Below, piece after piece: positions 3,440 to 27,100 of a stretch of DNA of 63,485 nucleotides (positions are counted from its first letter, which is position 1; every line of letters begins with the position of its first letter). Below the pieces are notes generated by a model that ran no database searches, was not told where the DNA came from, and saw only the letters and a list, made by a program, of their open reading frames with translations. The DNA lies in assembly GCA_000708835.1 (NCBI GenBank), contig DF237177.1, positions 62,001 through 125,485 of the forward strand, written 5' to 3'. Position numbers and translations under genes: made by a program. This DNA is from Klebsormidium nitens. Lineage: Eukaryota > Plantae > Klebsormidiophyceae.

Positions 3440-4638
3440 CTGTTCACGACGAGCACAGACTTGACACGACAGACTCTTAGCATGTACATTCCCCTCTTGC
3501 ATGGAGCAATCTGGAAGGCGTTGCTGGTGCTCATGTACTAGTAAGGTGTCAAACTCCTTAAAAGGAGTATGTCAAACCTGGGCGAACAAACACAAGACGC
3601 CATTTGGCATTGCGTGGGTTATCGTGTTTGACTTAACCAGCAACCCTTGATGTTGTGCCAATAGCCTCTGCTCGAGCCGGGCTAGAACACGTGGGCAACA
3701 TGAGGACATTGAGGAGCTAGGTTACTTCTCATAGCGAAAGTACTTTGCCGCCTCCTTATTTCAGATTGTCGTTCCAACACGGAAACACTTACATGCAGAT
3801 CATGCAACCTTCTCGCCGATCAGCACCGTCTGATATTAATGGATGATTGCGAGATATTATGCATCATGGTCATACATTAAGTATTAGCCATTTGCGACCA
3901 TAGGTATACGTGTCTTGAGCATTGAACGGTACATCTTAGATTGACCACGCATGGGTCCCGGCGCTGCATGCGGGCGGCAATGATAATGCCACTCATGCGA
4001 ACCCGACTGCAGCTTCTGAAAGTTCATATGGACCAATATGAGCATATAAATTGCACCAATAATGAGCGGCGTGTGTATATACAGAGTTGTTTATCCGGCG
4101 GCCACGAGATTGAAGGCCGCTCCAGTGATTCGCGGCATGGCTGTTTGTGTCGGCTATTCCCAGAAAGGTCAGGCAGATTCATGGCCCGGGACGAATTTGA
4201 TTTCATTTCGGTACAGTAATTGGATTTATTTCAGCTAGTGAATGAGCGAGAATTGCATCAACTTCGCGTTGCAGCCGAGGCATATACAGCATGCCATGCC
4301 CCACCGGCTCTTTACATTGTTCCAATCGAAACCTAAGCAGCCCCTAACCTAACTAACAGTGCATGCCTATGTAACAGCTTTTTAGCATGTACAAAAAACG
4401 CGCAAGCCTCGTCCTTTCAATTACCTGCCAGCGAACTGTTTTATAATATTCTCAGTATCCAACTTTCGGCTGAATAACCTTCTGTGCATGGTGAATGCAG
4501 GTGGCTGTTTTTGCGGTCCGTCCTGACAACCCGCAAATCTGTAACAGCGATCCGGTAATCCGATTATTGCAAGATTGAACGAGCACGGATCTAGTTTCTT
4601 ATGCGCAAGCTTCGACTGCAGACCAAGGGGTTGCGGGG

Positions 4639-7600
4639 TTATTGAGAGATTTTCTCCCAGACGCAGTAGTCGCAGCCGAAGCAGGCCACCTTCCAGTCGC
4701 ACTCAGGAGGAGCCAGATGACCCATGTCGTGCCTGCAGGTTAAAACATTCAATGCGTCAATGACGTGCCACGTAAGCGGTCGCAACAAATAGTGCAAGCA
4801 ACGTCTACACGCCACCAACTTGCCACGGTTTGCTGAGTGGTGAAAGCACTGGCGAGAGCACCTCTGCCGCCTCCTCAAACCCGAAGCGCGAAACTCCATT
4901 GTCTCTGAAGAATTCATGGGACCTGACTCACAAGAGCACGCATGAGACATTCGAAACCAAAGAAACCCAGTACTTTGCCAGAAGCGTGCTAAGGGATCTT
5001 ACCTGGGTCCGATTTTCACAATAATCTTGTTGTCAATCTCCGCAACGTACAAGTCCCCGTCGGCGCACTTGATGTCGATCTTGCTGTTCGCCCGGATCCC
5101 GTTGTGTTTCCGGCACTTGATCAGGTTCGAAATCTCCTCCTTGAGGCCCCAGTCATAGAAGTGGTCGTAGAACTGCGAGGGTTAATCGCAGGTTAGCCGG
5201 AGTTCTTCGCCGAAATTTGATGGTTGAAAATTCGTTATGTACTGAGGAGTCCCGTCTGTCGGGGACAGAAGAACCTTGCACAAAACGTGCAGTCTTACAT
5301 GTTCTACGGTTCCGCTTCAGGGGCGCAAAGCTAGAAGAGGAGAGTTTGCCAGATTCACTCTTGCAAACCGTGCAGATTGCGCCCTACCTCGAAGTTCTAT
5401 GTTTACACCTCCTAATCTTCCAGCCTCATCAATCTGCAGTGTGCTGCCAAGCCCCCAACCCCATTCCCTGCTTACTTCGTACTGCCAACCGGCTGAGTCA
5501 GCATGTCTGCTTCCAGTGCGTCCAACCACTGTCAAAAGGCAAAAGCTTGCCCAACACACCTCGCCCAAGAAAGAACCAAAGCCCCACCTCGAGGATCGCT
5601 CTCTCAAGGCCACTCAGAACGAACAAATCCGGAGTCCACTCAGGTACGGAGAGACCAACCTCGCTCACGAGACCACTTCATCCGCCACAAGAAACATCAG
5701 ATACTAAAGTTCTTGTGCTGGATTAAGTCGTTTCGTGTGCCCAACCCGAAAGCTCGCTCCCTAGAGCGACAAGACAGGAACACATTCGCAGCCGACTCAC
5801 CACGGAGGGGATCCCCGGGTGCGTCAGAATGTACGCGTATCCCTGCATGACCTTGTCCGCCGGGAAGGGCCAGTGGTTCTGCGTGGAGCCCGTGTCGTGG
5901 TTGTCCAGGAACGTGACCGCCTTCTCGGGCATCCAGCCGATGAGGCCGGGCGGGAAGTTGTTCTCATCGCGCAGGCGCCACAGCTCGCCTTGCACGGCCT
6001 GCTGCAGGATGCCCTTGGTGGTGAAGTCGAAAGAGGAGCAGAGGCCCTCCGCGCTGTTGATCCAGTCGACCAGCTGCTGCCGGTGGAAGTCTGCAGGGAG
6101 GCGTGAAAGGGTATGTTTAGAGTGTGGATAACAGGGTTAAAGCGGACGAGTTATGGTTTAGGACGGGGCAATCTGCTGCCAATAAAACTCTCTTGGGAGA
6201 ACAAGATTCCAAATGGGGCCCGGACAGTGAGAAGGACGAGAACATGAGGCTGGTGATAGTATCTGCGGACGTACTAAAGTCGAGAGAAAGCAACGTTTGA
6301 TATGAGCGAGAATTGAAGGACACGAGAGAGGTCCTGTCTTTATAATGGGGTCCGGTTTGTAGAAATGTAAGCAGAGAGGACGATGGGAGAAGAAGGCCGA
6401 GCAGAAAGTCGGAAGAGCATCGACACGGCATGCTCGTTTGGTCTGCTGCCGGATGAGGTCTCCAGGCAAAAAGCTTATGGTCTCGAGTCCAAAAAACCAA
6501 AAGCACGGGACGAATGCAACTACGTGGCAAAGGGGTATAGATATGAAGTCGACATTCCTTCGACCGGACCAGAGTCTCTGCACGAAGATGGAAACACCAC
6601 CTTGTCGGGACTTAAGCAACACATTGCTTCAGCTCGTGACATGTTTGCCTCAAGCTTCGTGCCTTCATGAGCGAAACTTTGGCCCAGGGGGCCAAATGCA
6701 TTAGGCGACAGTCTTTCAACGGAAGGGTTTAAACCAGGTAAGTTGCCAAACCGTCTTTCTCAGTTCTGTAACGACTGTGATGGGCCAGGTCATGTTGCAA
6801 TAACATGCCTTGTTGTTGATCCGTCCCCTCGTAATATCTTGCTTCATTGGATTACTGTTCGTTTTGCCCCTGAGACTCATCAGTTTACCAGACGTTTTGC
6901 CCCTGAGTACATCTCATTTCATACTCTCAAGCCCACAACCTACCAAGCCTCTGCCTCACATGAAGTCCCACAATCCAAACCCAAACCCTAATCTCCCAAA
7001 CTCTCATAGTTTAAACCCAAGAAGCGACCATGGACACGCTTAGTAGTGAAGATAAGGGCATCACTTTCCAACTTCACTCGTCCACTCAATAAGAGAAAGC
7101 CAAAAGAGAAGCAGTCCCTCACCTTGGTTGTAAGCAGGCCCCTCGCCCTCATACCCTATGGAGGTCCAGTACTCCCCCACCGAAAACCCAGGCCCGGTCT
7201 CCTTGCAGTACAGCGCCACGGCCCATCCCGCAAAGCCCTTCGTGAAGTCAAACCGCCAGCCGTCATAGCCAACGTCCTCCTTGAGCCACTTCATCCAGCC
7301 AATGAGATCCTTCTGCACTCTCTCGTTGGTGTGGTCCAGGTCGGGCGCGGCGCCGTAGTCCTCGCCAGTGTCAGGCGCTCTGTTTGGAGAGGGAGTGGCG
7401 TCAGCGCATTCTAGGGTTTGACAAGAAATTATTTTCAAAGAACTGAGAGGTGACACTTCATGACTTACTTTAGCATTGCTGCAAGATATGTTTCAGGTCT
7501 TTCATTCCATGGAGGCAGTGAAGAGGGCAGGGCTTGATGCATACGACACTTCCGCTCCAGTAGCCACTTTCCTGGTCAATGTGTGACTGTTTGTGATTTA

Positions 7601-9388
7601 GATCTGCTTTCAGCGGTGGAAACCCTAAGTTCGGATACCCTGAAGATTACAATAGAAGCACCAAGAAATTGAAGTGCTGCTGACCTTGCATACAAGAGGT
7701 GAGAAAGACCTTACTCTGGCTTCAAGAAAGACACTCTCACAAAGATGATTCTTAGATACCCAGTTTCAAATCTGATCAAAAATGTCTCCCTGAAGTGAAG
7801 TTATCATTTTTCAGGAAGCCCTGGCAGGCTTGAGGAGGACTGCACCACCCCAGCGCCTTACCCTGTGCCGTCTCCAAACTCGTCATCCTTCGCAATGGAC
7901 CAGGGTCCCCAGTCCAAGCGTTCATCAGGTGTGCCTCCCTCAAAGATACACCACACGCCGCGCTCGTCCTGCAAAAGGATTGGACAGCTTAAGGTACTGC
8001 ACCGTCGTTAGGGTTTGCTATGAAGAAAAGCTGATCAGTGCCTGGAGGGAAAGCAGATGTCCATTGTTCCAGTTGCAGATGATTGTGAGGGTTAATTGCA
8101 TCAACAGTAGATCTGCAGAGGAATGTTTACAGCAAGATTTGAAAGGAACAACAATCTCAAACCATTGAATGACCACGAAACCCTAAAGTTCAGGGTACGA
8201 GACAGCATCACCAAACACCTCTGTAACTGCTTCGGCGCTGTATCATGAGAAGACAAAGCTGAGGACCGAGAGATTAGCATGAGGCAAGACGCTTACCTGC
8301 TGATCAGCACACCGATGGTTGATGACAATGTCGGCGACTGCGCGCACGCCGTTGGCATGGAACTCGTCAATGAGCTCCTTCAACTGCTCCTCATTTCCAT
8401 ACTTGGAGGCATCCAGGTTGTAGAGCTGGCCGGGAAGATAGCCTGCGAGGAAAAGCCGCTTGTGAGACAAGGCTGGTCTACCAAAGATCTGAGAATACCA
8501 CTGGTCACTGTGGATTCCTCGAGAAAAGTCAATCAGACGGATGTTCCAGAGCCAGTCTTGTCCCTGATCAGAAATGAGATGCAAGTGATTTAAGAAGCTC
8601 ATCGAATGCAATGTAGTGTCCAGGCAAGTTGGATTCAAACAACTGCTTGCTGTCCATGAAAATTCGAGGCATCGCGTAGCAGAGGGATCACTTGGACCAC
8701 AGACTCCGTAGCTTCTAAAACACTCAAGTGAATCAACATAACCATCCACTGGCCAATCCTGTCTTTTGTGATGCAGTCCAATGCAGGGACTAAGAGTTGT
8801 CTGTAGAGTTCTGATTTTTCCTTCCAGATCTCACAGAAACAGAAAGGTCTATGATACCAACTTGCAAATTACCAACAAGCAGCACTCACCCTGAGGAGCC
8901 ACTGACTGGCTCGGCGGTGGCAGCCACACGTCGGTGATCCCTGCCTCCGCCAGGTCCTTTGCGCACTTCTTCAGGATGTTGTACCAGCACTCGTTCTTGT
9001 TGGACTCCCAGTTGAACCCCTGAAACATGACCACGTCGTTCCAGTCGCAGGGGATGTTGCCACCCCTGGAGCCCTTGGTGGCAGGCGCCTTCTTCACCTT
9101 TTCTTTCGCCTTCACCTTTTCTGGCATTTTGGCCGCTTCTTTGGAGGCGTCCTCTGGCTTCGATTCGGCTTCGACAACAGCGGTGGCCCTAACTGTAAGA
9201 TCTCTGGCGTGGGACATTGCCTTTGGCGTCTGCTTCAGGAGGGAAGAGCCTCCTAGACTGCCGGCACTCAGCCGGAGCATGCTAGGGAGGCTGCATTCAG
9301 ACGTGCGCAGCTGCTTTGAGATGGATGAAGTCTCAAATGCCGCACGGGACAGTACAGACGCCTGCACCAGAGTCGAAGCGGTTGCCAT
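4639..9388 (-). CDS. AMY: Alpha-amylase (GH13, plant AMY type) with transit-peptide-like N-terminus; exons 9388-8890, 8442-8297, 7968-7862, 7379-7123, 6090-5801, 5172-5003, 4732-4639 (520 aa)
   Basis: Exons join in phase (1563 nt). Motifs [41 protein letters not shown] (nucleophile Asp), GEYW (acid/base Glu), FLDNHDTG (Asp), YILTHPGIP and the C-terminal beta domain FYDHFYDWG...[15 protein letters not shown]. Confidence 0.95.
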
Positions 9389-10206
9389 CGTGTCTCACTC
9401 AACAAAAGCACAAAAGCTGTCAGCAAGCACGCTTGATTTGACAACACGAACACGCGAGGATCAGGGCCACCACTTCCTAGCAAACAAGCTCAAAGAAACT
9501 TTATTCTGAAATGGCTAAAAGGATCAGTGGCAGCAAGGCTTATGTTCGTGAAGAATGATCGTCTCGTGCCTCCTGATCATACGAAAGAGACCTTCTGAGA
9601 AGTCCTTTCTCTTTCCCTCTCCTTCCTTCCCTGCTTGCACCTCACCCCCGAAGACATGAACGAAGATGCACAGCTTGACAATCATCATCGGGAACACGAG
9701 GGGCTGCACAAACTGCCACGTGCTTTACAGTAGTGCACAGGGTTTGCGATGCACTGCTCTCAACCGTCGATGGGCCCTTGATTGGTCAACATCTGCCAGA
9801 TGGCCTGTTCTGCGCCTACCAGGTGGCAACCACTTTTCTTGAAAGTGACAGGTGGCCCACAATCAGGCATGCATCACTAAATGTTGGATACGGAAGATAC
9901 GGATTCCGCAGCAATGATTGCGCTTCGGTCCGTCCGGATCGGGATTCGTGCGGAGGGCCTGCCTCAAGATGCCTCAAATCTCGGCGGCGCATGCACATTG
10001 CAGTCCCAGCTTTCTTCTCGACACAAAGTCCTACTCCTAGTATCATCTCGCATGCGAGTCGCTAACACAGTTTTGGAATAGGTATACCGAAATGGCCTTG
10101 AGTATCCTTCGCAGAGTTCTGGCGCACTCCACGGGCCTGAATCCGTAGCGATTTATCTGCTTCGCCAGCTCAGACTGAGCACTTCTAGAACGTCCGTGTT
10201 CTTGAT

Positions 10207-10259
10207 TCCTGGCGGCAATCATCTGGATTATCCTGGCGGCAATCATCCTGGCGGCAATC
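10207..10259. repeat. Short tandem repeat, 3 x TCCTGGCGGCAATC(AT)
   Basis: Copies start at about 10207, 10231 and 10246. Confidence 0.8.
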
Positions 10260-12254
10260 GTGACTACGAACTAACCTGATCAGCCTCCAAGTTGAACATC
10301 CTTACCACCTTCTCGTCACATTTGTCATATGCATTACACTGAACCCACACTGAATTTCAACTGAATTGGCTACTGCTAAGTTCCATTAATGATCAGTTGC
10401 AACTTTGTCAACTCTGGCGTGAAGTCTTCAAACATGCAAAGTGCACAAAGACGGATCACACGACAATCTTCGTTGGATTTGGAAATGTGAGCGCAAATCT
10501 TCGTATCAATTAGCAGTACCTCGAAGGACAGCTCGGAGGGCGCGTTAGCCGAGTCAGCCTGCATCAGAAAAGGCCGAATGTGCCCTCCAAAGAAAACAAT
10601 ACAGTCGCTAAGTTCATAAATCTGCTCACCACTGCAGGGCCACTGCATCACATTTCAGTCGTTGCAATCTGCATGGAAAGAGCTTCTTGCTTAACATGTA
10701 TTGAATTACCTTCGTTACTTTTCTTTTGAGTCGGCTAACTGTCAAGACAATCGGGACTTCCCGTCACAAGCCTTCCCTGCTGAGGCCTGTTGGCGAGCGT
10801 TCGTTGCTTCTATCGCTTGTCAAAAGAGAGTGTTGAGAAAGGGTTCCTCGATTTCTCAACTAAGTCTTAGGTTCTTGACATTGGATAGGCCCAGTTCGAA
10901 ACTTCAATCTCTAAAGCATTTAGATCCGATCAGCAAAGGGAAGAGCTTTGCCGCCTGGCTTAGGACGGGGGTGCATTTGCCTTCATTCTGAATACTCTGG
11001 ATTGTCGAAAAAGGTCGAGTCAATGGAAGAGCTTATCCTTGGAGATCGACCTTTTCCAGTAAGTCCCTGTGACTGATTCGCTACGGCTGCCATGAGTCAG
11101 GCATCGGTTCCGACGACCAATTGATATGAATCGAATCCAACTCGACGGTCATCTTCCTGTTTGCTCCAATCTGTTCCTTTGACTGAAGAATGTATACTAT
11201 CTTATCAGCATAGTGACTCCACTCTTATATTGCTAGTGCCCAACGTCAGGTATAAGTTCCATCGAAGCAAGCTCTTGTAACACAGCGTTAGCCGCATAGC
11301 TCATAAAGCTCGACGCTCTATCGTCGATCAAGGCGTCTAGTAAAATCTCGCTTCATCTTCAACCCTGTGGGCGACTGCAGCTACTTGGGAATTACAGTAT
11401 CTCTTCCGAAGGATCTTACAAAAATCACAAAAGCAGTAAGCATATGTAGAATGATACACGGTCAGAATTTCGTATGATGTGCATGGCAATACAGGTGGCA
11501 CAGCAGCAATTCTCGCCGGCAAGGAAGTCTGCAACGTGGATCAGTCAGATCGGAATATCCGCCAAACTGTACTTTTAAGCTTTATAAGCTCTATAACTGC
11601 AGTGAAGCTGCTTCTCGTACGAGGTAATATCTGATCATCAGAGCTGGCGAAGTCCTTGCGAACGAGTAAACGGCTTTTGAAGGATTCCAAGCAATCTCGG
11701 GATCAACGAACAAACGGAAACATGGAAACACCGTGACTGGTCACTGACAGTCACAGCACTATATCTGCGTGGTGAATACTAAGCGCTTGAGGTTGACCCT
11801 ACTTATCAATAGACTTCATAAAATAATCCCTGCCTTGCCGGATGATGCATCAACACTGTCTCAAACAAAAGTTTCTGCATCGGAGGGGAGTGACTCCAAC
11901 CACAAGGCAGGCAGACTGGTTTCGTTCCGTCTTCCTGCGCATACCAGGCCTTGATCCTCCTTGCAGGAGCGCCTAGGGAGCGCTTCAGGTGAAAGCATTC
12001 GCAATACAACTCGTTTGCCCTTGAAACGGCACGGACAAGCTCCTTAGCGGAGGGCGGGTCCCGTTGGATTTCCTGAGGTTCCCCCTCTCCGTGCTGTGGC
12101 TACCCTTTGGTTCTTCACGGGGGCTATTCCTCCTTGTAAGCCTTTTCACAAGCTGCTGTTCGGCAATCTGCTGAACTAATCTTGCTTCCGAACACGGGGT
12201 ACTTCCCCAGGACTGCCCCAACCTTTGCAAACAACGGGAGATTCTCAAGGGACA

Positions 12255-15200
12255 ATGGTAAACGAGAGGTTTCTCTACCTGTTGACATGGGTCGTTTTGG
12301 TGGGCTTAATGATCAGCGACCTCTCCTCGAGGCGACATCCTGCCCCAGCGAAGGCGGGCTTGGTCGCCCTTTCGGTGCCTCCTACCAGGGACTGCGAGCA
12401 GCGGCTCAAGATGATCACTGCGTGCCACGTGGCGGGGCAGGCGTGCTGCCACGTGTTCCAGGAGGCCAACGCGAGGGGCTGCTTCTGTTACCTGGCGAGT
12501 AAGTGTCAGCAGAGTCAAAATGCTGCTCAGTGAGATCGGGCTTGGATTGCTCATGATGTACTAAGTACGTCACTGCAGCAGATATAACACTCATTCTCTA
12601 CTTCGTCAAGGGATGGAAGCAAAGGCAAGCTTCTCCGTGTGAGCCATATTCGTTCACCTTCTTGAGGACTTCTTGATCATATGAATTTAGGAGCAGAGAC
12701 TGATTTCAATGGCGTATTTAAACACTTGAATCTGATGTTAGTTTTCAAAGGGCAGGTGCCAAAGCAACCAGTTGACCACGAGAGCGGGCTAGAAATTGTA
12801 AAATACATGTGACGTTTCCTTGAGAGTACTCTATCTGTCGAATTTCAAAAGCAGAAGATGCGAGAAGGACTTCAACTTCGGCAGTAGATATTAGCATTGA
12901 AAATCAGTCGACTCTCCTTTTCGAAGGCACCGTTCGCATCAGTCGTTGATGCCGCAAGGAGCCGAAAAGCGGCTAAACACGAGCACGATTTGATCTTCCT
13001 TCAGATAATAAAAGTCTGTGATGTATCCATCCGATCCTGATTCTTTAGATTCCAAAATTCGGTAGAGTGATGTCAAGACGAACGTCATTGTGCTGCATCA
13101 CTTGGAGCTGCGAAGACAAAAAACATTGCGGACGCAATGACTTTGACAACATTTGTTGTGGCCTCATCCTTTTGTAGCCTTCGGATATCTAATGACGACT
13201 TTCACGTCTGTCGTGGATCTGAGCTGAAAGTTGTCTCTATTCTGTGAACTCAGACTTCTCCGTGGAGGGGGCGATGTCCCTGACGTCAGCCGACGTCGCG
13301 GCTCTCGCATCGACCTGCGCGGTCCCCTACGTCAGCGTACCAGGTGCTGACACGTGTCCCTCTGCCCCGCGCTCGCGCTTCCCGGCGGCCCACCTTGAGA
13401 TCGTCATTCTGTTCGGTTACGTCCGCACCCCGGCTCTTGGCGCGCGTATTCACACCTTCCTGGCGCCGGTGACTTCGCGTTTCGCCCGAGGCGTCTGGTC
13501 GGAGGTGGGAATAGGCCCCGGACGCGGTTTGGGGGATCCCTCTGGCGGTCCGTTTGCTGGTCACACAGCCCAACGAAGTGCCCGGGGGATGCTTCCGGGC
13601 CCAGAGGCTGAATTGAGAACGAGCCTTTTGGAAAGCGCGTTGTGGAGCTTGCCGCGGGGACCGTTTCTAAACGGGAAGAAGCAATTTGAGACGTCTGCGG
13701 AGCAGTCCATGGTTCTTTCTTCCGGTGCGGTTCGGCGCAAAGACGTCGGTGAGAAAGCGGTCCTTCCGATCCTCCCGGAGCAAGATTCCGTTGCCGGGGA
13801 GGGTTCTCGAGCAGATGAAGAGCGGAAGGAGCGGAAGCGGAGGCTGGCTACAGGGAGCTTCGTCGGAGGAGCGGACTTGCTGATCAGCGACGAGTCTGGC
13901 AGCTCCGGCGGAACGGTTTCATCGGAACGGAACGGGGTGTGGCACAAGGGCACGTTTCATGCCGCAGATAACCGTGACGTGAGGTTGCGAAAAAAGAGAA
14001 GCCCATCGAACGAGGCAGACTTTGATGTAGCAACCGTCGAGGCCTTGATCCGAAGCGAGTTTCTTGGGGACGTGCTTCCCGAACGTGACGTTTCGACCAC
14101 GAAGTCGCCGGACTCCGCGAAGACAGAGCTTTGCACCGGAGGGGATTCCGCTCGTTTCGCTCGTTCCGCTCGTTCCGCTGAGCCCCTCGGCGGTGGCAAA
14201 ATGGATACTCTTCCTGACCTGTCGTCCCCGTCAGCCAGAGACGGGGGCAATGAGCGGATTGACCGAGAACCGAATGAGTTGCAGCACGGGCCGTTCACAG
14301 TAAAGGACAAAGGTCCTTCGGCAGACGAACTAGACTGGGCTTACTTTGCCAGTGTGCGACAGTTGCAGCAATACCGGCAGCATACGGACGCTTTTCTGGC
14401 ACGCCAGGGGTCAGTTCCGGACGCGCAGGAGAGCGGAAGCGGAAGGCAGACGGACGGAAGCGGACGTCCGGAACCCGCGGAGGAGCCCACTGTAGGTAGG
14501 TTAGAATCAATTCTCTCATGTTTGCCGTTTCTGACTCTTCTCGAGGTATTGGCCTTGGTCCTTCACCTTGCTTTTCCGTCTCCTTTCACCGTTGTCCTGC
14601 TTCGGTCCCCTGGTCGGCAGCGGAAGGAACGTCCGACGCGCGTAACGCGAGCGCAACTGTTGAAAGCAACGTACGTGGGAGATCTCCTCTTCGTGTTTGC
14701 AAGGCGGGTTGCACCAAACGGTTCAATCATTTTGTCTTGCCACATCTTTTCAGAGTCAAGTAACGAGGCAAGTTACCTCAGGCGTACATCCTCACTCGCT
14801 TGGTGAGGGTTGAAACCTGGCCATCAGGATTGCGAGCCTCATCGGGCTTTACTTAATCTTCTCGCATTTGATCAGAATGGTTTTTCCCAGTCACAGGCGT
14901 CGCTTGAGCTGTCGCGGTACTTCATTGCACTGTTGACGAGAAGATGATGTTTTGTTGCAAACATTCCATCGAACTCGTGACGAGAAGATAGTGTTCGCAA
15001 ACAAACCTTACAGTCCCTTTGACGCTCTGCTCCAATCCCTCCACGCGCAGATGATGAGGATTCACAAATCGCCCGGGACCCTCGCCTGGAACGTCTCTCC
15101 AACGGGCCGGTTGCGGCCTTACGCGCCCAGTCATCCGCCCGGGCATCATCAACCGACTTACTTCCGAACTTACTCTCCGACAAAAAGCAGCCCGGTAGGA

Positions 15201-15708
15201 GCTCCCGGCTTCCCTGGATCGCCCAAGTCGACTCCAATTTTCCAAGCGACCTTCCGCTTCTCAAACCGACTTCCGCACAGAAGTCTCCGCTTCTCATCGC
15301 ACTCAATGCTCCAGAGGACTCCCCCTCGCCCCCAGAAACCGCTCCCCCACCCCCCGAGTTCTTCCCCCCTCTCGTTCCGGAACCACCGCCGCCAGCCCCC
15401 GGAACGGAACCCCCTCCCTCCTCCTCCCCCGGAAACCAGTCCCCCCTCCCCCACCTGGAGCTTCACCCCCAACTCCTCCGCCCCTTTCGCCCCCCCCTCC
15501 GCGCGCGCAACCCCCTCCCCCGCGTGCGCATCCCCCTCCCCCGCGTGGGCACCCCCCTCCTCCAGCGGGAAAGCCTCCTCCCCCGGCCGCCCCTGCGCCT
15601 GCCCCGGCTCCGTCGTCTGCTTTTAGAATTGGTCGGGTTGATTCATTGTCCTTATGGCAAGTCCTAGTTGCGCTTATGGTGGGATACTATCTCGTGGCGT
15701 TGCTCTAA
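12255..15708 (+). CDS. Secreted 8-cysteine-motif (nsLTP/prolamin-like) protein with long disordered region, Pro-rich region and GPI-anchor-like tail; exons 12255-12498, 13254-14495, 15051-15708, with a probable 1-nt deletion in the C run near 15441-15446
   Basis: Signal-peptide-like N-terminus (MVNERFLYLLTWVVLVGLMIS). The phase-1 splice 12498/13254 completes C-X9-C-X6-CC-X10-CFC-X24-C-X12-C. The phase-1 splice 14495/15051 continues in frame into PEDSPSPPETAPPPP. One extra C gives SPPPP/APAPAP repeats ending PSSAFRIGRVDSLSLWQVLVALMVGYYLVALL*. Exon 2 may contain further introns. Confidence 0.72.
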
Positions 15709-22856: not shown

Positions 22857-24173
22857 TGACTTGAGTAGCCAGCTTTTGACAATGGTTTGCAGATCACAAG
22901 TCCGCTAAATGAAAGCCTCAGGTTGAATGACATGAGCGACTGTATATTATGCAGAGGTGAATCTTCTTGAGAGGCCACCCGACCTCGGATTCTGAAGCGC
23001 GGATTGATGGAAATCAGATCCCAACACCACATGGCGGCATCCGTGCAATTTGTAAGCAATCATTGTCGACAACTATTGGATATAGAAGAAAGACGCCGCG
23101 CGCTTTGCCTCTTGGGGTTTCAACAATGCATGTGTGCTGCCGGGACAATCACCAGTTCAAATCAGTTTTGGACATCTTGCAGACTTATCTGATTGTCAGG
23201 ATTCTCTCGCTTCGACATGCAAACCCAAGCTTTGACTGGCAATTCACCTGCATATAACCGTGCTCACCGGTATATGCATCACACATGCATTCCTTATGAA
23301 ACCAACGCTCCTTATGTGGTCGGCATTAAGCCATGCGGCCGATCATAAAAGCGACATATCGCGTCCCTTCCGTCAGCTCTTTGGGCTCATTATGTGGTCG
23401 GAAGCCATGCGCAGAGCAAGGCGATGCAATAGTTGAAACATTCTTAATTGAGTCATTCCTTGCAGCGGCCAGCACTCAGATGAGCCTCGGACTCGTGGAG
23501 AGTCATGCGGGCAGAATGACAATTTGCGCGCGCGTGAGCTTGCAGCAAAAAGGAAGGCCGGCCGCGCCTGGGCCGCGGGCGCATTGCGCCCGCTGCGCCG
23601 TTCATGATCTTTGCGCGCCGCGGGCCCGTTCGATCGCGTTCAAGTTCTCACACAGGTCTCGCAGCATCGACGGTCGACGGGACCTCGTCTGTTGCAACAT
23701 CGATCGAGCAATTTGAACGGCTCAGAAAATTTTCAAACTTTGAATGGCGACGCTCCTCAAATCCGGTAGGTGCCGTCCTGCTAAACAGAAATTGGTGACT
23801 GGCCAAGGGCCTACCAAATGAAGTTCGGTGTTAAATAAACGGTCACGATCGCTCCTGACCGATCGGACGGTGCACGCAGGGTGATGAACGTGACGGATTC
23901 TGCCGGTGCCGGTAAATATTGCTGCATGACCCGCAGAGGACGCCACGTCAGCACCCCCCGACAGTGGAATCCGAGCCTTTTCGATCATGGTCCGTCGAAC
24001 GCTCGGGACTTAGGGCTAAGCGACTGGGCATCACAGCCAAGGTCGGGGCTCAGGCACTTAGAGAGAGGCCGCGGAGTCCAAAAGGCAAGTTCGAGGGCCC
24101 GGTAAAAGCGGACCGGGTAGCAGCAGGCAGGTGGAGGCGCACGGGGGCTTAGGGAGGAAGAGGCGTGATAACC

Positions 24174-27100
24174 ATGGAGTCTCAGGCTAGTCTCCAGCAT
24201 TTCAGCAATGAGTTGAGCAATATAGATCCGGACACTGTACAGAGCATTGCGTCAGGTGCGGTTAGGGTTGACATTGTGAGTTGCCAGGAGGGCGTCGCTG
24301 TCAAGTGCTTCACATGCGCTCACCGCATTTGGGTCAAGAGCAAAAAGTCCTCCAGCCTCATGACGCTTGCATGGCGCAAGAGCGACCGCGGCACGCTGAT
24401 GGGCTACCTGGTCAGTGCTGATGTTCCGAGGGCCAAGCAGTGCAAGCAGGTTNNNNNNNNNNNNNNNNNNNNNNNNNNNNNNNNNNNNNNNNNNNNNNNN
24501 NNNNNNNNNNNNNNNNNNNNNNNNNNNNNNNNNNNNNNNNNNNNNNNNNNNNNNNNNNNNNNNNNNNNNNNNNNNNNNNNNNNNNNNNNNNNNNNNNNNN
24601 NNNNNNNNNNNNNNNNNNNNNNNNNNNNNNNNNNNNNNNNNNNNNNNNNNNNNNNNNNNNNNNNNNNNNNNNNNNNNNNNNNNNNNNNNNNNNNNNNNNN
24701 NNNNNNNNNNNNNNNNNNNNNNNNNNNNNNNNNNNNNNNNNNNNNNNNNNNNNNNNNNNNNNNNNNNNNNNNNNNNNNNNNNNNNNNNNNNNNNNNNNNN
24801 NNNNNNNNNNNNNNNNNNNNNNNNNNNNNNNNNNNNNNNNNNNNNNNNNNNNNNNNNNNNNNNNNNNNNNNNNNNNNNNNNNNNNNNNNNNNNNNNNNNN
24901 NNNNNNNNNNNNNNNNNNNNNNNNNNNNNNNNNNNNNNNNNNNNNNNNNNNNNNNNNNNNNNNNNNNNNNNNNNNNNNNNNNNNNNNNNNNNNNNNNNNN
25001 NNNNNNNNNNNNNNNNNNNNNNNNNNNNNNNNNNNNNNNNNNNNNNNNNNNNNNNNNNNNNNNNNNNNNNNNNNNNNNNNNNNNNNNNNNNNNNNNNNNN
25101 NNNNNNNNNNNNNNTGTTAAAGTTGCTCTACGACAATTCTCAATTGTGCGGCCACAAGATATCTCAATTGTTTGAATCAAGAAACACTGACTCAATGGGC
25201 TCCATACTTGTCACACTGCCTCACAATGGCAGGGAGGTTCTTTTAGAAGACCTACTCCCGCCTTGTGTTCAAGGAGGCAGCGATGGGCATCAAGGAGCAG
25301 GCGGTGCGCTACCTCGAAATGATGGCGGCTCCCGAGGGGTCGGTTCGCGTTTTCCTGCCGACAGGGTCGGCGTCCCCTCCGCTTAGTCTGTACATGTCGG
25401 CATGGGATCACAACGGAAACGGCCGGCCAAAGAAACTGGGAAAGCCGGACAAGACGCATGCTTTGCCGGAGACAGTCTGGTGGGACACGCGCGGCAAGCT
25501 CTGCTGTACGTGCGACCGGGGCCGACTGACGGAGGGACGCGCCGTGCGTGCACAAGCTGGCTTTGGCGGCCATCAGCGAAAGCTGGGCCTCAACAGCGGA
25601 GCTGCCCACCCACGAGTTGCTTGGCAAAGGGGCGAGGGTAGAGCGGGTTGGAGCAGACGCGACGGGGAGCTATTTTGCGGTAGCGGACAACGTTCAGGGG
25701 CCGCCGGGCCCTCGAAGGCGCATGGTATTCCGCAGCAGCAAGGGGGTGTGGTACTGCAAAGGGAAGCGCGACGGGTGCCCATCTCTTGTCGATTGCTCGA
25801 GTGCGGCAAAGACGGCTCTGAGAAATGAGGGGGACCTTCCGATCGCCGACCAAGTGGTCATGAGCCTTTCGGAGCCGATATCCAGGGCTGCGCTGGGCTG
25901 GCTCAAAGCGTGGAGCCGAGAGTTGCCGACAATCGGACGGGGGGTGGTGCCCAGCGTGGGGGCACCCTCGCCCCCAACTCTGGTCAATGAAGAGCAATAC
26001 CTCATCGAGCTGCTAGAGCAGCGGCCCCACGAGCGGGCAGCGTGCGCCGGCGACACGTGCTTTTGTCGTCAGCATGATCGACTCTTTGAAGAGGCCGCTG
26101 CACACATCTCGGACGGCGATCAGGGCCCGGAGAAGGAGCCGGTTGCGGGAGAGGCACCCCCTCGCAAACGGGCAAGGCGGAACAAGGCTTTCTGGGAGGC
26201 GCACAAGCAAAGCCCGCATCCGGCAACGAGACGAGGGTGGGACGCGCGGCCACCAGCAGAAGCGAGGGGGAAGGAGGCAATCCGGGGTTGGGTTGACGCG
26301 TGCACGAGCTGCTCGTTGGCTGCAATAGCGGTCGCGGGAGGCCGATGCAAGCACGGACTGAGAGGCCTCGAGGGTTCGCGCCCCCGTCATGCTTTTGAGC
26401 ACGGAGGCGGTCCAGGTCTCAAAGCCCAAGCTAGCTCGCCCAAGCGATGCGCATGCTGTTCATGACCCCCTAGTAACCTCGCTCAGAAGCCCCGTCCCCG
26501 TGAGCGAGCTTTGCAAGTGCCACTTTCGAGAGCTTTCAGAGAAAGGGCTGCTTAGCGCGCTCTGCCCATTGGACTCTCCCGCATGCGGCGGCTCGTGGGT
26601 CGAGATGTGGGTCCAGGCAGACGTGACGGCCTCCCAGTGGAGCCAGCAAGTGCGGGTGCGGTTATTCCATTGCCAGTGCCTCGACGAGGCGCACACGATC
26701 CACTTTGACGGGGAGCACCTGGGGTTGTACGCGTGGAACCGGCGGACCCTCTTTGTGCAACAGAGCCTACAGCTGCTCCTGCGGGGGATGCAGCACGGGC
26801 ACAGCTTCAAGGCAGAGCTTGCGACCCATCAAACGGCCTTCCATTGGTTGCCGGACGCTGTTGTTTTGAGCGAGGAGACGTGGCGAAGGGCGAGCCTCGA
26901 CTTCTTCAAGCTGGTTGGGCTGGGGCTCCGGGATTGCTGCTCGTTGTGCGGTCCCCATCCAAAGGTAAGCTACATGACTTACTCATGCAAAACACAAGAG
27001 GACACGAGAATCTTCTGTCTATTGTGTTTCTCCTGTCTATCATTTTGTGACCGTGAGAAACATGCCTTTAGTGTACATTCTTCCATAATTAGTGTACATT

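Follow-up and report, generated by a model that had tools for sequence, protein, structure and literature searches.

We examined the plus-strand gene at positions 12255-15708 of a 63,485-nt stretch of Klebsormidium nitens DNA (contig DF237177.1). This whole stretch is referred to below as the window, and counts of open reading frames (ORFs) and of patterns were taken over all six of its frames. The locus is the spliced three-exon K. nitens gene KFL_002280120: in a protein database search, exon 2 was 100% identical to the NCBI "hypothetical protein" KFL_002280120 (Klebsormidium nitens, 700 aa), and the host is therefore a charophyte alga, as an earlier reading of the letters (hereafter the original prediction) had supposed. 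The splice sites of the database model (P0001) are identical to those that we read from the window, and its UniRef label begins "Bifunctional inhibitor/plant l…". As the original prediction had noted, the ORF track gives three separate ORFs at this locus, and splicing, by the same sites as in KFL_002280120, rebuilds a complete eight-cysteine motif with a hydrophobic C-F-C centre. The annotated protein keeps the frame in which exon 3 is entered and ends with ...HCPYGKS at 15667, without a hydrophobic tail.

Our best explanation, to which we give a probability of about 0.55, is that KFL_002280120 encodes a surface chimera with a signal peptide, an eight-cysteine domain, a proline-rich part, and an end of the glycosylphosphatidylinositol (GPI) type that is hidden by a frame break, probably a Roche 454 indel. 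This layout had been proposed originally; it holds as the ancestral or true reading, but in the assembly it requires a frame correction. The parts of the gene are listed in Table 1. Analyses of the joined protein used the database model, other searches were run exon by exon, and the length of ~712 residues given below for the proposed full protein is arithmetic on codon counts.

Table 1. Parts of KFL_002280120 and landmarks of its 3' end (window coordinates)
Feature	Position	Strand	Description
Exon 1	12255..12498	+	ATG at 12255, hydrophobic N-terminus, C1-C6; ends in phase 1
Intron 1	12499..13253	+	GTAAGT...CAG, phase 1; inside the eight-cysteine motif, three codons past CXC
Exon 2	13254..14495	+	C7 at 13316-13318, C8 at 13355-13357, then ~380 residues; ends in phase 1
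Intron 2	14496..15050	+	GTAGGT...GCAG, phase 1
Exon 3, first part	15051..15430	+	codon starts at 2 mod 3; conserved LPWIAQV block, then first Pro-rich stretch (SPSPPETAPPPPEFFPP...)
Frame-break zone	15419..15441	+	homopolymer runs C5, A3, C6; coding signal moves from 2 mod 3 to 1 mod 3
Pro-rich region	15436..15612	+	frame 1 mod 3; five x-PPPP-xx heptads, then PAPAPAP
GPI-attachment-like signal	15613..15708	+	frame 1 mod 3; stop TAA at 15706-15708
Stop of annotated model	15665..15667	+	frame 2 mod 3; closes a Leu/Arg/Pro-rich off-frame reading (...RLRRLLLELVGLIHCPYGKS, stop)

Two orthologues were compared with the K. nitens gene. L001 is a Logan assembly contig of SRR23617307, from a congeneric alga, and is collinear with window positions 4269-15421 at 72-93% nucleotide identity; L002 is a more distant orthologue on a JGI metagenome contig, reached through a profile search with exon 1. 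In that search (HMMER, exon-1 profile against 1.84 billion representatives), two relatives (P0003 and P0004) and one spurious repeat protein (P0005) were returned, and a word-index protein search with exon 1 returned only a fragment of L001. Two metagenome scans gave no match, in a collection that also lacks the L002 contig itself, and look-ups for another contig with the L002 gene led only to L002 itself.

Eight-cysteine domain and its relatives

The signal-peptide-like start described originally is borne out by the hydrophobic N-terminus that follows the ATG. The exon 1 protein begins MVNERFLYLLTWVVLVGLMISDLSS, and by inspection its signal-peptide-like part covers residues 1-25, with a hydrophobic core at residues 6-20 and L-S-S before RRH. 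A small residue stands at position -1 in both K. nitens (L-S-S/R) and L002 (S-W-A/H), again by inspection.

The Cys codons of exon 1 lie at 12393 (C47), 12423 (C57), 12444-12449 (C64-C65), 12480 (C76), and 12486 (C78). In the joined protein the cysteines are at residues 47, 57, 64, 65, 76, 78, 103, and 116, and their spacing, C-X9-C-X6-CC-X10-CXC-X24-C-X12-C, conforms to the pattern of nonspecific lipid-transfer proteins (nsLTPs), C-Xn-C-Xn-CC-Xn-CXC-Xn-C-Xn-C. The part of this pattern that covers the first six cysteines, C..C..CC..CXC, has its sole site in the window here. All eight cysteines are conserved in L001 and L002 (8/8 in each), and both introns are in phase 1 and at the same positions in the three genes. 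Of the gaps between cysteines (9, 6, 10, 24, and 12), the second is the short C2-C3 loop of the original prediction, confirmed at 6 residues in K. nitens and L001; it is 9 in L002.

A search with hidden Markov models, proposed along with the original prediction, aligned two Pfam families in register with residues 47-109 of the database model, LTP_2 (PF14368; E = 0.042, 14.4 bits vs. a cutoff of 22) and Tryp_alpha_amyl (PF00234; E = 0.06, 14.0 bits vs. a cutoff of 21.7), but both remained below cutoff. They are the only Pfam families that match the cysteine domain; a third weak row, HDV_ag, falls at residues 267-309, outside this domain, and when exons were submitted to Pfam one at a time, no useful match came back. 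In the ESM Atlas, LTP_2 accounts for each of the three feature clusters closest to the query (0.85; 178 shared features). Comparison of the ESM Atlas model with LTP-type clusters gave template modeling (TM) scores of 0.57-0.60, which are a lead only, the cluster of the LTPG-like At2g13820 scoring 0.57. With moderate confidence, we place the cysteine domain in the LTP/prolamin superfamily and do not claim strict nsLTP membership. The original description of the domain as LTP-like is upheld only at the superfamily level, by the sub-threshold Pfam matches, the ESM clusters, and the UniRef name.

Conservation of exons and linker

The exon 1 protein is 84% identical to that of L001 and 45% identical to that of L002, and all six of its cysteines are kept. 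The ratio of nonsynonymous to synonymous substitution rates (dN/dS) against L001 was 0.35 in exon 1, 0.46 across exon 2 as a whole (0.28 in the block that follows C8), and 0.48 in the initial part of exon 3; because these values range from 0.28 to 0.48, the whole gene is taken to be under purifying selection. Along the synteny with L001, conservation was uneven, with a nucleotide identity of 89% in exon 1 (12264-12505), 72-74% in exons 2 and 3, and 93% at 5781-6099.

The post-C8 block comprises ~50 residues (window ~13376-13534, P0001 residues 123-175), is conserved in the three taxa, and has the pattern FE..I.FG...AL.AR..T.L...RFARGVWxEVGI. No Pfam family or ESM Atlas cluster matched this RFARGVWxEVGI block, including when residues 40-180 were used as the query, and the block may add a structural element to the domain. 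Past it, exon 2 encodes a long low-complexity stretch and then a conserved helix; most of the ~380 residues after C8 were modeled with low confidence. The helix, DELDWAYFASVRQLQQYRQHTDAFLARQ (window ~14321-14407, P0001 residues 438-466), is the most confident element of the protein, with a block-mean predicted local distance difference test (pLDDT) of up to 85, and its core, WAY..SVRQ, is conserved in L002. The original prediction had described a long disordered spacer of ~450 aa: the region is indeed long and mostly of low complexity, but it holds blocks conserved in three taxa, and dN/dS in exon 2 is ~0.46.

Reading frame of exon 3 and the GPI-like tail

Exon 3 is entered at 15051 with codon starts at positions 2 mod 3, and this entry frame is open to the stop at 15665-15667. 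Frame 1 mod 3 (the tail frame) is open from 15199 to 15708 and carries the SPPPP and APAPAP modules and the tail SSAFRIGRVDSLSLWQVLVALMVGYYLVALL, which ends at the stop; the two open frames overlap over 15199-15667. According to the original prediction, splicing would yield these modules together with a tail of small residues, spacer, and hydrophobic end. That part failed: the modules and the tail lie in the other frame, and no GT..AG intron giving the needed shift (-1 or +2) is present at 15350-15460. A short frame-repairing intron was rejected, as the only GT dinucleotides nearby would put the join in the wrong phase and leave too little room for an intron. Because no GT..AG pair yields the shift, the tail is reached across a frame break at ~15419-15441 and not by splicing.

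Upstream of the break, L001 confirms the entry frame to ~15418, with stops in the other two frames and indels that are all multiples of three. Downstream, GC content per codon position in the tail frame is 0.90/0.90/0.53, and a sliding profile of codon-position GC places the switch of coding phase between ~15405 and 15450. Codons of the CCN type number 35 in the tail frame, where each of the four synonyms is used, and 15-16, almost exclusively CCC, in the remaining two; C vs. non-C differs by coordinate mod 3 (chi-square test: P = 9e-9). A 21-nt tandem repeat underlies the Pro-rich heptads, which at 15487-15591 read SPPPPRA, QPPPPRA, HPPPPRG, HPPPPAG, and KPPPPAA; differences between heptads number 7, 8, and 25 at tail-frame codon positions 1, 2, and 3, respectively, and are wobble-biased. 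The LPYIAQV block of L002 and the xPPPP repeats after it, of which at least 75 residues are covered, share one uninterrupted frame. On this evidence from codon-position composition, heptad differences, and the L002 orthologue, the results show frame 1 mod 3 to be the real coding frame after ~15436.

The tail consists of Ser-Ser-Ala (15613-15621), a 10-residue spacer (FRIGRVDSLS), and an 18-residue hydrophobic end, LWQVLVALMVGYYLVALL, with a mean Kyte-Doolittle hydropathy of 2.09. An end counted as GPI-like if a triplet of small residues at the omega site preceded a spacer of 5-12 residues and if the last 14-21 residues were uncharged, with a mean hydropathy of at least 1.7; of the 909 open stretches in the window that span 40 codons or more, this tail alone passed (1/909). 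The putative GPI signal lies solely in frame 1 mod 3, and its join to the upstream frame is absent from the assembly. Both frames contain sequence of the kind that defines chimeric arabinogalactan proteins (AGPs), i.e., at least three [STAGV]P dipeptides, at most six residues apart, outside the domain (PMC12209756): the tail frame has AAPAPAPAPS, the entry frame SPSPPETAP.

If the annotated model were correct, the product would be a soluble secreted protein ending ...HCPYGKS at 15667, and the tail would be an accident of an untranslated 3' region. Both the assembly and the NCBI model read so, and the protein collections searched yielded no transcript or protein with the tail. Past ~15436, however, the annotated frame varies at codon position 2 and its Pro codons are only CCC by-products, whereas the other frame has the 35 CCN codons with four synonyms and the wobble-biased heptad differences; moreover, the homologous repeats of L002 share a frame with its IAQV block, and a GPI-like end is found in just one of the 909 open stretches. 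We therefore regard the annotated 3' end as improbable.

The K. nitens genome is a Newbler assembly of Roche 454 and Illumina GAIIx reads (PMC4052687). Because the break falls in C5, A3, and C6 runs of a 454/Newbler assembly, an assembly indel accounts for it most economically, the likeliest form being a one-base indel in a 454 homopolymer, from which the corrected frame would follow. The assembly is most likely one base short, with two extra bases as a possible alternative. The main rival cause would be a genuine, recent frameshift in NIES-2285 that removed an ancestral GPI signal and left an incipient pseudogene or a soluble or wall-bound form. The downstream frame is still coding-like, as expected soon after such a mutation, but elsewhere the gene shows purifying selection in comparison with L001, and C5/A3/C6 runs in a 454/Newbler assembly are a classic site of base-calling indels; we consider a genuine frameshift unlikely. 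The two open frames overlapping at 15199-15667 would also accommodate programmed -1 ribosomal frameshifting, by which both frames would be joined and two products made. This possibility was rejected, given that the break zone has no X XXY YYZ slippery heptamer and that L002 is unshifted and needs no shift; the off-frame product, furthermore, resembles non-coding read-through, and we give programmed frameshifting almost no weight. More generally, a 454 homopolymer indel in the K. nitens assembly can mask the C-terminal signal of a gene product or make a gene look like a "frameshifting" one.

Proposed protein, known systems, and significance

In the surface chimera that we favor, an N-terminal signal peptide would be followed by a divergent eight-cysteine domain of ~70 residues, of the LTP/bifunctional-inhibitor/seed-storage superfamily, and then by the conserved extension of ~50 residues (RFARGVWxEVGI) and a long linker, largely of low complexity, that contains one conserved helix. 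A proline-rich stalk of the x-PPPP-xx/APAP type and a C-terminal GPI-attachment-type signal would complete a protein of ~712 residues. The frame break would give the annotated protein a spurious off-frame C-terminus and conceal the anchor signal. The protein would be imported into the endoplasmic reticulum and form four disulfides, its Pro-rich stalk would be hydroxylated and glycosylated, and transamidation at Ser-Ser-Ala onto GPI would lead to display at the interface of plasma membrane and wall. The eight-cysteine domain may bind a hydrophobic ligand there, as suggested by analogy to the LTPG and xylogen-type proteins of land plants.

A number of results weigh against this proposal. The scores of LTP_2 and Tryp_alpha_amyl are both under the gathering thresholds, exon 1 by itself matches no Pfam family, and searches of PDB sequences with phmmer and hmmsearch gave no relevant match. 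Two AlphaFold models (4 and 7 alignment rows) had a mean pLDDT of 35 and 43, with values of 30-76 in the domain, where helices 45-59 and 65-73 alone reach ~70 and the C7-C8 half stays below 50; with these low-confidence models, Foldseek and VIA-align returned generic helical matches (Z < 5) and no match to an LTP or to the PDB. The C2-C3 gap of 6 is outside the range reported for land-plant nsLTPs (n = 8-30; PMC9832785). AGP-type glycosylation of the Klebsormidium stalk is doubtful, because Klebsormidium extracts were reported to be without AGP-antibody reactivity (PMC7612518). As for the tail, neither orthologous contig extends into it, a word-index protein search with the tail as query found no relative, and we infer the frame correction from genomic sequence.

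The results on the domain bear on one further explanation, in which the eight-cysteine module is not a lipid-binding LTP domain but another small disulfide-rich one (a cavity-less prolamin-type or a convergent one) and the protein a structural Pro-rich wall glycoprotein or adhesin. The sub-threshold family scores, the very short C2-C3 loop, the intron within the cysteine motif, a mature size ~10 times that of a typical nsLTP, and AlphaFold models too low in confidence to show the domain fold are all in line with it. On the other hand, every Pfam family that falls on the cysteine domain is LTP-type, as is each of the nearest ESM clusters, the X in CXC is hydrophobic, the gaps of 9, 10, 24, and 12 are within the nsLTP range of 8-30, and Chlamydomonas proteins found by pattern alone bound fatty acids (PMC9832785). 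We judge a domain of this kind, not a lipid-binding LTP one, rather unlikely, and retain the LTP-type surface chimera in the comparisons that follow.

One of the closest known designs is that of type G nsLTPs (Arabidopsis LTPG1 and LTPG2, Physcomitrium PpLTPg), which have the order proposed here of signal peptide, eight-cysteine domain, Pro/Ser/Ala-rich part, and GPI-type signal, and which share with KFL_002280120 the hydrophobic residue in CXC and a presumed location at the outer plasma membrane. KFL_002280120 differs from them in its length (~712 residues, of which ~460 separate the cysteine domain from the Pro-rich part), its C2-C3 gap of 6, the intron inside the cysteine motif, the post-C8 RFARGVWxEVGI block, Pfam scores below threshold, and a tail that is out of frame in the assembly; it is also known from sequence alone. 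Xylogen and xylogen-like chimeric AGPs (nsLTP domain PF14368, arabinogalactan (AG) motifs, and GPI) follow the same chimeric design, and like xylogen, KFL_002280120 has clustered [STAGV]P dipeptides (APAPAPAP, SPSP) beside the putative GPI-type signal. Unlike in xylogen, its main Pro motif consists of contiguous, extensin-like PPPP heptads and not of AG modules, PF14368 is under threshold, and AGP epitopes are reported to be absent from Klebsormidium (PMC7612518). Hybrid proline-rich proteins (HyPRPs) are likewise secreted wall proteins with a Pro-rich repetitive domain and an eight-cysteine domain, but their Pro-rich part is N-terminal and their cysteine domain C-terminal, without a GPI signal, so that the order in KFL_002280120 is reversed.

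Algal nsLTPs are known already. A 2023 study reported 29 from green algae, including two from K. nitens (KnLTP1, GAQ85394.1, and KnLTP2, GAQ82741.1; PMC9832785), and the premise of the original prediction, an origin of nsLTPs in land plants, is out of date. The proteins described by Huang et al. (2023) (KnLTP1, KnLTP2, and CrLTP1/2) are green-algal, secreted, and of the eight-cysteine type, as is predicted for KFL_002280120, and like it they contain introns and have longer flanks than in land plants; KnLTP1 and KnLTP2 have ~229 residues and gaps of 8-50, whereas KFL_002280120 has ~712 residues and a gap of 6. KFL_002280120 itself is not among the proteins reported in PMC9832785, where all gaps were required to be 8-50 residues and the mass at most 60 kDa; it could not appear in that set because its gap of 6 is less than 8 and its mass is above 60 kDa. 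The main text of the same paper mentions GPI for land-plant type G only and contains no GPI analysis for the K. nitens proteins. KFL_002280120 is an algal relative of land-plant surface lipid-transfer proteins, and as such it is not unprecedented.

Edstam et al. (2011), as cited in PMC5052319, considered charophytes to be without nsLTPs; reviews and a 2025 paper still hold this of streptophyte algae (PMC5052319, PMC12209756). G-type nsLTPs have been proposed to originate as chimeric AGPs and to be among the earliest forms (PMC12209756), and the layout that we predict for KFL_002280120 fits this origin. A Klebsormidium protein of G-type layout would place the architecture before the origin of land plants. 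Klebsormidium is reported to carry a cuticle-like layer of lipids and glycoproteins (PMC4927632), for which such a protein would be a candidate player. We suggest, tentatively and at odds somewhat short of even, that the full LTPG/xylogen-type architecture (signal peptide, eight-cysteine lipid-binding domain, hydroxyproline-rich stalk, and GPI anchor) predates the split between Klebsormidiophyceae and land plants and is hidden in the reference annotation by a frameshift. If this is true, streptophyte nsLTPs would descend from a membrane-anchored form of the G type, and such a protein would have served a cuticle-like surface layer of lipid and glycoprotein before land plants arose.

Elsewhere in the window, a repeat or low-complexity insert is suggested at 24001-26000 by a low GC content (0.40), strongly positive GC and AT skew, and long ORFs that overlap one another in several frames (24165-25386).

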